Shown in pieces: positions 57,684 to 63,675 of a stretch of 64,000 nt of DNA. Origin of the DNA: Dimorphilus gyrociliatus. Lineage: Eukaryota > Animalia > Annelida. Within the stretch, counting starts at the first letter, position 1; every line of letters begins with the position of its first letter. The translations under genes and the position numbers were made by a program. Location of the stretch: contig CAJFCJ010000002.1 in the NCBI GenBank assembly GCA_904063045.1, positions 62,001-126,000 on the forward strand, given 5' to 3'. The notes beneath the pieces were generated by a model, which was not told where the DNA came from, did not search any database, and saw nothing but the letters and a program-made list of their open reading frames with translations.

Positions 57684-60600
57684 TTAAAAATGATCAACAA
57701 GAACAGATACGGAATTTTTGCCTACAACGCCCTGAGAGAGGGCATCCAAACCGGCTAATTGTACGTCCTGCCATTTTGAACCATCTCCTGTCAAAAAGAA
57801 ATCATCTATTTATACTATATCACTTCGTAATGAGAATTTTTATTTACCCGATGTTGTGTCTGATGATGATTTTAGAGCAAATGCCCAGGAATCTGGGTTT
57901 ACGGAAGCGCAATGCGGTAATCTAAGCTCTACAGGTTGATCGAACTTTAAACCGTGAGGACCGCACATCACCAACGGACTCAGCAATGTTTCTCCCTTTT
58001 CCTTGTCCAAAGGAGGCATAAGTGAATTATCCTTACAGACCTGAAAAGAATTTCATCGTTTGTACCCTTTAGCAAAAAAACCGTCAAGCCCTAAATGTTT
58101 TCATTGAAAAGGGCAAATATAAATCCAATAGATGGCGCGCAAAGTTACCTTAAAATATATATTCTGTTGCACTCCATGCGGTATAGCACCTTTTGGTATT
58201 ACAATAGAGACGCCAGATTCGGGAGAATCTAAAATTCCCCCCTCATATCCAAATACACCTGAGGCGGTTGCAACTACCTCGTGCTCACCTTCTTCTGATT
58301 GAAGCCTATAAAAACAATTAATGATCAATTAAAATCCGACACATGACGCAATCGTTCTATCGATCTAAAGCTAATGCTACCTGTCACGCTGAACTTGCGG
58401 AACACCATTGGACGAAGAAGTAGCATAAAAACCGGGGCTAGTAACTAATTTTTTATAAGATTGAAATGAAGATGAGGAAGAAATAGGTGGTTTAGGGGGG
58501 GGAGGTGGTGGTGGTGGTGGCGGAGTTTCTCTTTGCTGCGAATCTTGATGGTATGAGTGTTGATTTGTAAATCGAGAATAATCAGAAAAGTGACTACATG
58601 CAGGGGAAAAGTAAAACAAAATAAAATCCTTAATAAATGCACTAAGCAAAAAAAAAACCAAAAATCACAAATAAATACAAATAACACCTACTTTTGAGAT
58701 GATTTAATGGCGGCGAGCTTTTCTCCATTTGTTTTATTGGCGTTCAATCTCCCTATTATTCTATCATTTTTCTGGAAAGTGCTTGTGGAAGAGTACGGAT
58801 TACCCTTTCCAGGTCTTGCAGAATGTTTAGCTCGCCGAATTTGGTTAGCGTCAACGTAAATAGGATTGTCCAAATGCGTTGGCACGTTTCTTCTGGGTGG
58901 GCTAACTTCCGATTGAAAATCGCTTAGCTTTCCATATGGACTCTCTTCTTTAGCTAGCTTATCTGCTTCTGAAACCCAGTTTTTCTGCTGTTTTTGCTTC
59001 TGAAGCCAATCAAAGTTTGGACGGTCAACATAATGCGATACTGGTCTATCGTGACCTGGATATTTTGGAAATGCTTGATTTACAACTGTGCTCCTTGGTC
59101 TGTTCCTTTCGTAGTTCATACGATTCGGTGGTGGCTTACTTTGGGGAGATCCATCACGAGTTTCACGTCTACTTAATTTTTGATCATCTGAAGTGTAACC
59201 GGAAGTAGCAGGTGACAATGGTTGTCGTACTGGCACCCTAGTGTAAGTGGGCTCCCTTCTGGAGGATGCTTCTTTAACTCTCAGCTTGACATCATCTTGT
59301 TGATTAGCCAAATAATCATCCATGACTGCCTGATTCTAAGAGCAAAATATTAATAGAGGTTACTAGCCTGTCTGTCTAATAAATTTATAAATGAAGAATA
59401 AAAAATTTACTCGATATTCTCTTAGACTAGGGGTTGAGCTGTAGGTTTTAGGATCTTGATGGTTTTTATGTGTTGCTTGCTCAACGACCTGATATTGTTT
59501 GGCGTGCACCCGGCTGTATAGTGGTTCACCACGTCTACTCAATTCTAAGTGAGATCATTTTACACAATTAGAAGAATAATAAAATAAACTGAGATCGTCA
59601 TTTATTTACCGTTGTCATACGGATAATGTGCTATGTCCGTGTGTGATTTGCTAGGTCCATTCTTTTGCTAATAATGTGAATTGTTTGTAAATTTTAAGAT
59701 AAAATAAATTAAAATAAGTGCATTCTTATGACATTTGATAGTGTTAATAAAATAGTAAAAAAAAAAATCTAATCGCCTACCGGCAGAGGCGGTACAGCTG
59801 GGGGTTCATAACCATGCATGTATGCCGGTGGATTAGGGTAAGGAGGGATTCCAGGCACCCTTTCAGTAGTTGATAAACTAGGATCTGAATTAGTTCTATA
59901 AAAATGTTTTCTGCCTGAAATACGATGCTGGGGTTGGGAAACATGCTCATGCTCCTGTTGATTCCATACCGCGTCGATTTCTCCTAGATCTTCTGGTCCA
60001 GACGCATAACTATGACGATTGTCAGCTAAAGGAAAAAATTAAATTAGAAAAATATAACTGATATTTTAGCACAATAGGATTAATTAATAGTAACCTCCTG
60101 CCATAGGAAAGAAATATTCATCATCAACGTCCATTTCAGGTGCCTCATGGGTCATCCAAACTGGCTGTTGTTGTTGTGCATTAATCGTCTCTTCAAGCTT
60201 ATTAAGCCACTTTTCCCCTTCTAAATAGACATATGTTGTAAAGAGATGACTATAAATCTTTTCCAGCTTTTCGCTTTGGTCGAATAGACTTTTTGGTGAT
60301 TTTCTGCTCTTCTTAACAGATTTGTTGCGTAGGTATTTAACGGTTGCCTTTGACGCAGCCTTTAAAAAGACAACGATGGGGACGTATTGGGCGTGTTGGA
60401 GTCTGTCAACAGCCGATGGGGTAACATCAAGTAAACAGTGTTTTTGTGTTTCTATCACTTTACGGATGCTCTGTAACTTGATTATCCCTGATCTGCCTTT
60501 AGTGTTGCTCTCAGCTTCTAAACGTGTTTTAAGATTGCATCAGAAAAGCAAATGTGGATTGATGAAATATTTATCAAAGTTATAATAAAAGAAAATATTT

Positions 60601-63600
60601 AAGGACTTACGAGGTGATTCATAAGATTTTGAATAATTCTTTAATAAATGCTCTCTTGCAACATCAGCTAAGGATCCAAAAATAACCACAGGTCTCACGA
60701 AAGGCGCTAGTAAAATATAAAAATAAGTAGATTGTGTCACTATTCACAAAAGTATTTATAACAAAAATTTTTCTAAAGGTGCTAATTGGACTGAAAATAG
60801 TAACCGGCAATAGTATATAAGAAGTGGAAAAACTTTATTTGATGTAAAATCGAGAAAGACAACTACAACTACAACTAAAGACATGGTTCTCCTATTTGCT
60901 TTCCTACTTGTTGCAGCAGCTACTGCAGCGGATCCTCCGGTCGATTTAGAAGAAATTGAATCGTATTTGGCTCAATTTGCTGGCTATAAAAAATCGGAAA
61001 ATACTCTTGTGGCCAGTTGGGAAACAGAAGAATTTAACGAAGCTGTTAAGAGATTCCAACGTGAAGTTGGTTTAGAAGAAACAGGCAGACTCAATGAAGA
61101 AACCTTAACTTTAATGAAAGAAGATCGTTGTGGTATTACCGATGGTGGTGATGGTGACAATAGTCAAGATTATCAAGTCTGGACAAGCTGGTTTAAATAC
61201 TCTCCAAAAAGAACCCTTTCTTATTGCATTACAGACTACACAAAAGATCTTTCACCAAGCACTGCTCGCCGAGTCATCTCAGATGCCGTTAGAGCTTGGA
61301 CCAGATACGGAAACTTGAATATCAGATATACATCAAGCAGGAGCTGTGACTTAAAAATGAAATGGGGTGTAAGAAACCACGGTTGCTTCTCTCCCTTCGA
61401 TGGTAGAGGAAGAATCTTGGCTCACGCCTTCTATCCCACCAATGGTGACGTGCATTTCGATGATGACGAATACTGGACAGATAGAAGCAGAAGCGGAAAG
61501 AATTTGTACTACGTTTCAGTTCACGAACTTGGACATGCTCTTGGCATTCGTCACAGTAGAGTTAGAGATTCAGTCATGTACCCAATTTATCGTAGCTACA
61601 ATCCCAACTTTAAATTGCACATGGATGATATCAATGCTATCCGTAAATTATATCGTAAGTTTTAAATAACTTTCTTATTAACGAAACCTAATGTTTTAAA
61701 ACCTATTTTCTTTTTCAAACAGCTTGAACTTAAAGGACTTCCTATTAGTGTGGTTTGTGTTTTAATAATAATGTTAGCTATTTTATGAAAAATTCAGTGA
61801 GTTACTCTAGTCATCAGATATAAATAAATCATTATAATTTGAGCACTTACGATCTCTGAGTACAACTCTTTCGTATGCGTCGAACTTCGTAGTAGGATTC
61901 GCTATTATTAAAACGAAAAAAAAATAGATATTTTTTGACATTGTGCAATGCAAACTTACAAAACACAACTTCTTCCCAATGATCTTTACTTAAAGACTTT
62001 GATCTTCTTGCTCTTTTCATAAAAAATATACTAGAGCTCCTTTTATTCTCTTTATCTTCGGTACTTTGAGCAATTTCTCTCTGCTTTGCAACATATTCTC
62101 TGGCCCTGCGTTAAAAACAATTTTTACCAATCACAAATGAATTACCAACTTAAAGGCCAATAACACTTACTTCTCTAGATTCGGAATCACTCCAATCTCA
62201 ACGGTCTTATTACCTTTTCCCAGTTTTCTCACACACCAAAATCCTGGTACACCATTGTATAAAGTGTCCGTAACGTGAAAGACATCAGAATTTTTAAACG
62301 GCATGCAATCCTTATCGGGATTATCGTATGAAAAATGAGCTCTAACATAGAATGAATCCCCAGATCCACCATCTTGCATTAGCCTGCTGAAATCTTCTTT
62401 TCTATTTTGAACCTGCAATTCCACCTGCTCTCGAAGATTCATTAAAACTGTTACAACCTCTTCTCGAGTCCTTCCACCCAACTCCATACCATTAACGGAT
62501 AATAGTACATCGCCTTCAAACAGTAAACCATAAGCAGGTGTTCCATAATTAACAGTTGCAACAAAGACACCGGTTCGATTTCCACCAGAAACTCTTATTC
62601 CAAGCCCAGATTTATATTTTGTAAATTGCACTATACGTACTCGAGAATCGAGTGGTGCTTGTTGGCTAGGCGATCCCGTAGCTGTCTTCTTTATCGGAAC
62701 TTGCTGATAATTCGAGTCTATAAAAATATCAAACACAAGTTGCCTAGTATACTAGAATGAGATTAATTATAAAATAAGCGAATACCCAAGCAGGCGGGTA
62801 AGGGTGGTCTAGGGGGACCATCATCTGCTGATGACTTTGCTGTATTAGCTGTATATATTGATTGAATTATAGTTTTTAATGAATATATACAGAGGCGTTC
62901 AAATTAAAGCAACAATTATTAAGCAGAAGAATTGTTTAGCAATGATCCACTTACTAGAATATATTTTTTCCTCGTTCAATCTTGGACTACTGCTATAGTT
63001 TTGATTTAAATCTGTTGAATTGTCGGAAATTCCTGTTCTATTTAATATTTCTCTTTCGTGCTTCGACACATTCATTTTTAAATGGCGATCTCTACACCTG
63101 TCAACCAATTTTTGAGCTTCAACTAAAGACAAATGACTAGTCTTTTGACCATTAATAGATAATATGACGTCGCCTTCATGTATGTTTTTTTCTTTGGAAG
63201 CTATAGAATCGGGCAATATTCGTGACACGAAGAGTTTGCAGCCAAATACAACTCCCCAAGGAAGATGAGAATTTTCCAATGTTCTCAATAGGGTTGCTTC
63301 TCGGCATTGCGATTGAGGGGAGGCCTTACGTCTAACGATTAAATGAACCGTATCTCCGCACTCTTTCAACACTGATATGGCTGTATTATAATCCACGTTC
63401 TCCAGACTGACGGAATTGACGAAAAGTACCCGATCATTATGGCTATAAGACGAAAGGAAAGTATTAAGTAATAGAGACCCCCCACTGTTTATATATTTTT
63501 CTTACAATAGACGACCTTCAGCCGGGCCTCCTCTCAATACGTCGGATATAGCTATTGACGGTTCCCCACTTGAAAAGTGAGGATTGTCTCGACCTCCGCT

Positions 63601-63675
63601 AACGGCTATACCGAATCCGTAAGGTTGCACCTTACTTAGAGTCACGTGGTGTGTTTCCCACATCGTGGCGTCGCC
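57684..63675 (-). CDS. TJP1: Tight junction protein ZO-1 / polychaetoid (PDZ1-3, SH3, GUK, ZU5); 5' end probably beyond the window
   Basis: PDZ1 [43 protein letters not shown]; PDZ2; PDZ3 [16 protein letters not shown]; SH3 [22 protein letters not shown]; [33 protein letters not shown]; ZU5 [40 protein letters not shown]; C-terminus VSVLVDHF*. Confidence 0.95.
60883..61665 (+). CDS. Minimal matrix metalloproteinase (signal, pro-domain, catalytic domain; no hemopexin), nested antisense in a ZO-1 intron
   Basis: Signal [15 protein letters not shown]; pro-domain [22 protein letters not shown] with cysteine switch DRCGITD; [25 protein letters not shown]; zinc motif [12 protein letters not shown]; Met-turn SVMYP. 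It ends KLYRKF* unspliced, or KLYP* if spliced 61655-61722 (stop at 61727). Confidence 0.95.
   Translation: MVLLFAFLLVAAATAADPPVDLEEIESYLAQFAGYKKSENTLVASWETEEFNEAVKRFQREVGLEETGRLNEETLTLMKEDRCGITDGGDGDNSQDYQVWTSWFKYSPKRTLSYCITDYTKDLSPSTARRVISDAVRAWTRYGNLNIRYTSSRSCDLKMKWGVRNHGCFSPFDGRGRILAHAFYPTNGDVHFDDDEYWTDRSRSGKNLYYVSVHELGHALGIRHSRVRDSVMYPIYRSYNPNFKLHMDDINAIRKLYRKF

Follow-up and report, generated by a model that had tools for sequence, protein, structure and literature searches.

Why does one ZO-1 intron in the miniature annelid Dimorphilus gyrociliatus run to 1144 nt, about 17 times the norm for a species whose median intron is 66 bp (PMC7854359), and does the gene that lies inside it matter to its host? 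The locus sits in a 64,000-nt stretch of DNA (contig CAJFCJ010000002.1, positions 62,001 to 126,000, assembly GCA_904063045.1), which we call the window and whose own numbering we use throughout. The intron holds a complete single-exon matrix metalloproteinase (MMP) gene on the opposite strand. The same nest occurs in a sister species, and both ZO-1 and the MMP are under purifying selection. With a probability of roughly 80%, we favor an ordinary pair of nested genes, host and guest, in which the guest explains the size of the intron and the nesting itself is an incidental by-product. Two features stand at the center of the argument:

60707..61850, minus strand: host intron of ZO-1, 1144 nt, phase 1, GTAAGT…AG, after the last SH3 strand and just before the GUK domain, with scripted junctions.

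60883..61665, plus strand: coding sequence of the nested MMP, a single exon of 260 aa plus a TAA stop, from the list of open reading frames (ORFs), supported by Pfam, an alignment to proMMP-3, an AlphaFold model and the ratio of nonsynonymous to synonymous substitution rates (dN/dS).

The host, which encodes a tight-junction scaffold, is a ZO-1-type MAGUK gene on the minus strand. Exon-by-exon Pfam searches of the window recovered, one after another, PDZ1, PDZ2, PDZ3-SH3, GUK and, at the C-terminus, ZU5; the exons were searched and translated singly, never as a joined spliced model. Among solved structures, human ZO-1 PDZ3-SH3-GUK chains come closest to the PDZ3-SH3 exon (E=3.8e-30) and to the first GUK exon (E=4e-3). 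The 53-aa open frame around exon A, too short a query, returned no PDB match. The coding features around the intron are:

57840..63663, minus strand: ZO-1 coding region, approximate extent, from PDZ1 at the ATG (63663) to ZU5, by Pfam.

62171..62736, minus strand: PDZ3-SH3 exon (Pfam PDZ and SH3_2), its 3' end exact and its 5' end the limit of the open frame only.

61960..62105, minus strand: exon that follows SH3 and precedes exon A (AREYVAKQ…DHWEEVVF), bounded by a 65-nt and a 58-nt intron, with scripted junctions.

61851..61901, minus strand: exon A, 51 nt (…AYERVVLRD), with scripted junctions, 78% identical to the sister species.

60611..60706, minus strand: exon B, 96 nt, start of the GUK domain, aligned with residues 228-258 of human ZO-1 chain 3tsw_A.

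60087..60517, minus strand: exon C, the rest of the GUK domain (Pfam Guanylate_kin, E=3.8e-10), with a 93-nt intron between it and exon B.

Scripted junctions fix the borders of the long intron. Exon A reads ttaataatag/CGAATCC…GAGATC/gtaagtgctc and the acceptor of exon B reads attttactag/CGCCTTTCGTG…, with slashes at the boundaries. An earlier note, made from the letters of this DNA without database searches, had joined exon 61901-61851 in phase to an exon from 60706 onward across 1144 nt; those coordinates proved exact, and the codon split by the intron, C/CG, encodes Pro. The introns around the locus measure 65, 58, 1144 and 93 nt, and every exon has AG before it and GTAAGT after it. The note's range of about 50-75 nt for the neighboring introns holds for the 65- and 58-nt introns but not for the 93-nt one. 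From the logic of phase and splice sites, collinearity with human ZO-1 and a comparison with a second compact ZO-1 gene, described next, we infer that exons A and B are continuous in one ZO-1 mRNA.

That second gene carries the same intron without a guest. It lies on a metagenome contig (ENA ERZ19565998; L016:2020-7396) and encodes a compact animal ZO-1 with PDZ-SH3, GUK and ZU5 regions and Asn/Ser-rich inserts. Its protein reads …YPAYERVVLKE, which exon A matches, and is then interrupted at the identical codon position by a phase-1 intron of 67 nt in which the guest gene is absent. A phase-1 intron after VVL(K/R)(E/D) is thus common to this gene and that of Dimorphilus. Because position and phase agree while the empty intron spans 67 nt, the ZO-1 intron is old and is short when it holds nothing.

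The plus-strand ORF inside the intron encodes an MMP, a matrixin of MEROPS family M10A. Its catalytic domain matches Pfam Peptidase_M10 (PF00413) at E=2.2e-46, with 158.1 bits against a cut-off of 24 over profile positions 4-158 of 159, and its prodomain matches PG_binding_1 at E=2.4e-8. Residues 13-257 align with C-truncated human pro-stromelysin-1 (proMMP-3, 1SLM) at E=1.5e-44, and the match to pro-matrilysin (proMMP-7, 2MZH) reaches E=1.4e-40. The AlphaFold model has a predicted local distance difference test score (pLDDT) of 80 and a predicted template modeling score (pTM) of 0.79. Its top structural match is again 1SLM (E=2e-21; template modeling (TM) scores 0.70/0.80), so that the same proenzymes rank first by structure. 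The Pfam scores, an orthologue of 72% identity and the pattern of substitutions across codon positions, the last two described below, show that the ORF is not open by chance.

The catalytic motifs of a metalloproteinase are intact. The zinc motif HExxHxxGxxH spans residues 214-224 and the Met-turn reads SVMYP (M232). Within an 18-sequence alignment, H214, E215, H218, H224 and M232 are invariant, as are the structural-zinc ligands H166, H181 and H191. The cysteine switch, DRCGITD, aligns with RCGVPD of proMMP-3, and the sister species (DRCGITE) keeps the Cys; the first and fifth residues deviate from the PRCGxPD consensus. Pfam and a motif check bear out the complete ORF with switch, zinc motif and Met-turn that the earlier note had reported, with the qualification that the switch is a variant and that the signal peptide was recognized only by eye. 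The N-terminus is hydrophobic and signal-like and is followed by D. An in-frame stop lies 23 codons 5' of the ATG, with no earlier ATG.

Three cysteines of this protein are notable. The Asp of the structural-zinc HGD motif is Cys168 in D. gyrociliatus (HGC; window 61384-61386) and Asp in the sister species; Cys168 may still bind the structural zinc. Cys115 (…SYCI…) and Cys155 (…SCD…), shared by the two species, are not usual in the catalytic domain of an MMP, so a disulfide is possible.

Is this ORF the whole gene? The stop codon falls three codons after the 'LY' that closes the catalytic domain, at the same place in both species, and the domain ends in 'LYR' instead of the usual 'LYG'. The proposal that the MMP lacks a hemopexin domain withstood every search. 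Pfam found no hemopexin (PF00045) in the protein; a whole-genome PF00045 scan gave 16 matches, none within megabases of the locus; and neither the remaining 2.3 kb of the window nor the next 10 kb holds a hemopexin-like plus-strand ORF. No furin-type RxKR site lies between prodomain and catalytic domain, while several paralogues in the genome have one. The predicted protein is a matrilysin-type, minimal-domain MMP without hinge or hemopexin.

One detail at the 3' end invites a different answer, that the ORF is a silent relic or one exon of a larger plus-strand gene with, for example, hemopexin exons elsewhere. A perfect plus-strand GTAAGT (61655-61660) overlaps the last MMP codons (…TAT C/GTAAGT TT TAA) and is kept in the sister species, so that it could serve as a cryptic or alternative donor; the 'LYR' ending points the same way. 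No conserved exon was found downstream of this GTAAGT, and a coding exon there is unlikely because, from the stop up to a conserved AATAAA block, the two species agree at only 42% of positions. The empty hemopexin and ORF searches, the shared stop position, the catalytic motifs, intact in both species, and a dN/dS of 0.12 all speak for an independent, functional gene. So do the signal-like start just after a conserved TATA box and the single-exon state of the other MMP genes of this genome. We consider a relic or a partial gene very improbable.

Candidate signals of its own flank the guest at both ends:

60814..60820, plus strand: TATATAA, putative TATA box of the guest, 63 nt before the MMP start codon, in a conserved block.

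61823..61828, plus strand: AATAAA, putative polyadenylation (poly(A)) signal of the MMP, conserved, 22 nt before the exon A boundary.

61795..61833, no strand assigned: conserved 39-nt non-coding block (82% identity between the two species) in which the palindrome GAGTNACTC and the AATAAA lie.

The guest unit fills most of the intron. The block GTATATAAG, which holds TATATAA, is kept in the sister species amid an otherwise diverged intron, and AATAAA lies about 160 nt beyond the MMP stop. From TATA box to poly(A) signal the guest spans about 1015 nt, and to its likely cleavage site it takes up about 1035 of the 1144 nt. Some 107 nt, from the acceptor to the guest TATA, are left for the host branch point and acceptor, and the 3' end of the guest transcript probably reaches the host splice donor. 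The guest accounts for the size of the intron, because its unit from TATA to poly(A) signal fills most of it; the 67 nt of the empty intron agree with this explanation, which had been offered from the sequence alone.

The nest is conserved in a sister species. A word search found the closest MMP relative, a 258-aa protein of 72% identity, on contigs of SRR23372228, SRR23372229, SRR23372231 and SRR31984834. On these contigs a GUK exon and a PDZ-SH3 exon flank the MMP, one at either end and both on the opposite strand; three contigs, from separate sequencing runs, were read at the level of DNA and the fourth from its listing. Global alignment with coordinate transfer recovered the same acceptor, the same GTAAGT donor and the same exon A peptide around an intron of 1137 nt. 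Differences between the two exons A fall at third codon positions.

Could the arrangement be an assembly artefact, as the earlier note had allowed, or a contaminant in the ZO-1 locus? The nest recurs in short-read assemblies made independently from another species, the flanking ZO-1 exons stay in phase, and at 40.7% GC the MMP coding sequence matches the host exons (39-41%). We found nothing to set on the other side, and the sister-species contigs effectively refute this explanation.

Both genes are held by selection. The MMP has a dN/dS of 0.12 at a synonymous divergence (dS) of 1.66, and its identity by codon position is 79, 84 and 52% for positions 1, 2 and 3. The PDZ3-SH3 exon of ZO-1 has a dN/dS of 0.01 at a dS of 1.88. 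At these values of dS synonymous sites are saturated. The nest has therefore survived a divergence that saturated synonymous sites, with both reading frames under purifying selection.

Such persistence raises the question of whether the nest does something. It could, as the earlier note had suggested, be a regulatory unit. Transcription of the MMP through the host intron might disturb ZO-1 transcription or splicing, or the host might disturb its guest, and cells would then switch between keeping their junctions (ZO-1 on) and remodeling matrix or junctions (MMP on). Alternatively, the two genes might share enhancers and be co-expressed. Conservation of the nest in two species despite saturated synonymous sites fits this idea, and work in Drosophila documents that nested genes can interfere with each other's transcription (PMC5174743). 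Yet conservation of a nest needs no function, since a guest cannot easily leave its intron, and surviving nested pairs in Drosophila have mostly evolved divergent expression, which limits interference (PMC5174743). Nor does ZO-1 need a guest, as two other compact ZO-1 genes have none at this intron. Nesting alone is no argument for coupling, because genes nested on the antisense strand are widespread among animal genomes. In Drosophila about 10% of genes are nested (PMC3814207), and protein-coding genes overlap most often in this way (PMC5174743, PMC3814207).

The closely interleaved non-coding sequence offers further ground for coupling. Only 107 nt separate the guest TATA from the host acceptor, and 22 nt the AATAAA from a host exon. 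Non-coding blocks of the intron are conserved, against 41-50% identity for ordinary introns in this alignment. The splicing of this species is reported to favor short introns (PMC7854359). On balance we regard a regulatory unit as unlikely.

Two stretches of the intron stand out in the alignment. In the 39-nt block, the center of the palindrome GAGT(T/A)ACTC varies between the species while its symmetry is kept. The block lies 17-55 nt from the ZO-1 donor and could serve either 3'-end formation of the MMP or splicing of the long ZO-1 intron. From the host acceptor to the guest TATA (60707-60813, 107 nt), identity is 65%, with ACAAAAGTATTTAT, TAATTG and AAAATAG conserved; these may be upstream promoter elements of the MMP that overlap the host branch-point region. 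No structured RNA or small nucleolar RNA (snoRNA) in the intron, 39-nt block included, matched Rfam at E≤0.1. A minus-strand pair resembling C and D boxes in the conserved block was considered as a snoRNA and rejected, as the sister species does not keep the pair.

Several points count against a purely incidental nest. The 39-nt block and the 65% stretch between acceptor and TATA are interleaved constraint that cannot be assigned to one gene. Splicing in D. gyrociliatus is reported to be tuned to short introns, which are spliced more efficiently (PMC7854359), and an intron 17-fold longer might carry a splicing cost, so that the nest may not be neutral. Persistence through deep divergence is also what functional coupling predicts. 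Finally, it is from sequence that we deduce that the MMP is transcribed and that the 1144-nt intron is spliced out.

A sharper form of coupling would be an antagonistic module. Antisense MMP transcription through the only long intron of ZO-1 would lower productive ZO-1 mRNA and toggle epithelial cells between junction maintenance and the remodeling of matrix or junctions, for instance at hatching, during growth or in wound repair. We hold this toggle to be quite unlikely.

Returning to the ordinary host/guest pair, we propose the following history. An ancient phase-1 ZO-1 intron, about 60-70 nt when guest-free, separates the last SH3 strand (…YERVVLRD) from GUK. A short single-exon gene would then have inserted into this pre-existing intron on the opposite strand in the dinophilid lineage, bringing its own compact TATA and AATAAA signals. 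Retention would be passive: excision without damage is unlikely, which is probably why the nest persists. Host and guest probably follow separate expression programs, and functional coupling would presumably be absent.

The nest is so far known from few loci. Word searches with the PDZ3-SH3 and GUK exons returned only the sister species and a few metagenome contigs, one of them too short to judge. Two other compact ZO-1 loci, both on metagenome contigs, have no guest between PDZ3-SH3 and GUK. The nest is demonstrated for two dinophilid or dinophilid-like annelids only. The comparison with relatives that the earlier note had called for gives a positive result in one sister species; the two other compact loci lack the nest.

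The guest protein is similarly isolated. An exhaustive search of 1.84 billion representatives found 8338 MMP relatives, and none outside the sister species exceeded about 46% identity as an orthologue. The named best matches are scattered: a tandem-MMP model from a fish, and proteins from mussel, scallop, Hydra, crinoid and insects. In a maximum-likelihood tree the two dinophilid sequences share a long stem as a lineage of their own, with support of 100/100 and no resolved sister group, and none of the seven other MMP loci of the genome is a close paralogue. Origin as a retrogene cannot be read from the single-exon state, because the other MMP genes of D. gyrociliatus are single-exon as well. 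A target-site duplication would be equally uninformative, since it would be erased at this divergence.

By analogy with its family, the guest would be made as a zymogen with a signal peptide, a three-helix prodomain carrying the cysteine switch and a zinc catalytic domain. We infer its secretion and activation from what is known of matrilysin and stromelysin. The enzyme would be secreted latent, with the Cys86 thiol blocking the catalytic zinc until the prodomain is removed outside the cell. Without hemopexin it would act like matrilysin, cleaving matrix and shed proteins broadly and sparing triple-helical collagen.

The genome has further MMP genes. One paralogous locus (L002) matches the D. 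gyrociliatus protein CAD5122118.1 (559 aa) exactly over its full length, which confirms the species. In several paralogues (L004, L010, L006) the matrixin catalytic domain is followed directly by a Hedgehog-type Hint module. In L004, Peptidase_M10 (E=9e-55) and Hint (E=2.7e-47) meet with Cys-Phe right after the protease end 'LYG(K)S'. Three MMP-Hint genes are clustered on one contig (C24:671443-677241, which includes L004 and L010), and L006 lies at C2:4476784-4477218. In two papers on Hog and Lophohog proteins we found no mention of a metalloproteinase N-domain.

The neighborhood of the nest may be conserved as well. In the sister species, Pfam identifies a WDR36/Utp21-like WD-repeat gene a few kb upstream of ZO-1 (L014:11556-12596), and similar-looking minus-strand ORFs occupy the matching place in Dimorphilus (C2:132067-135244). 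If these ORFs are the WDR36/Utp21-like gene, local synteny around the nest is conserved.

What the locus offers depends on how the two genes live together. If the nest is merely tolerated, it is a clean and very compact host/guest pair, with the whole guest unit in 1.1 kb, and a convenient test case for the coexistence of nested genes in a genome tuned to introns of about 66 nt. If the genes do interfere, a junction scaffold and a matrix protease would be tied together through their transcription, a link of interest to epithelial biologists. What is known of MMPs or of ZO-1 themselves stays the same either way. Our reading of the literature turned up no MMP nested within ZO-1, and the earlier note likewise knew of none described. 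The pairing appears new; the nested-gene arrangement itself is familiar.

As an enzyme, the guest resembles the minimal-domain MMPs, vertebrate MMP-7 and MMP-26 and the 'matrilysin'-like proteins of cnidarians and mollusks. Like them it has, besides a putative signal peptide, only a switch prodomain and a catalytic domain, lacks hinge, hemopexin and furin site, and aligns end to end with proMMP-7 and proMMP-3. A Nematostella protein of 260 aa shares the architecture at 46% identity. Bird matrilysin is 37% identical, and the tree places the dinophilid pair apart; the likeness shown is one of architecture, and orthology with MMP-7 or MMP-26 is no more than possible. Unlike the minimal-domain MMPs, the D. 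gyrociliatus protein has DRCGITD as its switch rather than PRCGVPD, and Cys for the Asp of HGD.

As a nested gene, the guest follows the pattern known from Drosophila, where a short intronless gene lies on the opposite strand in an unusually long intron of a longer host (PMC5174743, PMC3814207). Here, by contrast, the 'long' intron is only 1.1 kb, nearly filled by the guest, in a species with a median intron of 66 bp (PMC7854359).

The closest parallel is the nesting of TIMP genes in synapsin introns, to which the earlier note had rightly pointed. The pairs SYN1/TIMP1, SYN2/TIMP4 and SYN3/TIMP3 belong to an arrangement conserved from cnidarians and Drosophila to human (PMC2825198). In both cases a gene of the extracellular-matrix protease system lies reversed inside one intron of an unrelated host and is kept across species (PMC2825198). 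There the guest is an inhibitor and the host synapsin, whereas here the guest is a protease and the host ZO-1. The ZO-1/MMP nest is also far younger or narrower, shown in two dinophilids only and absent from two other compact ZO-1 loci.

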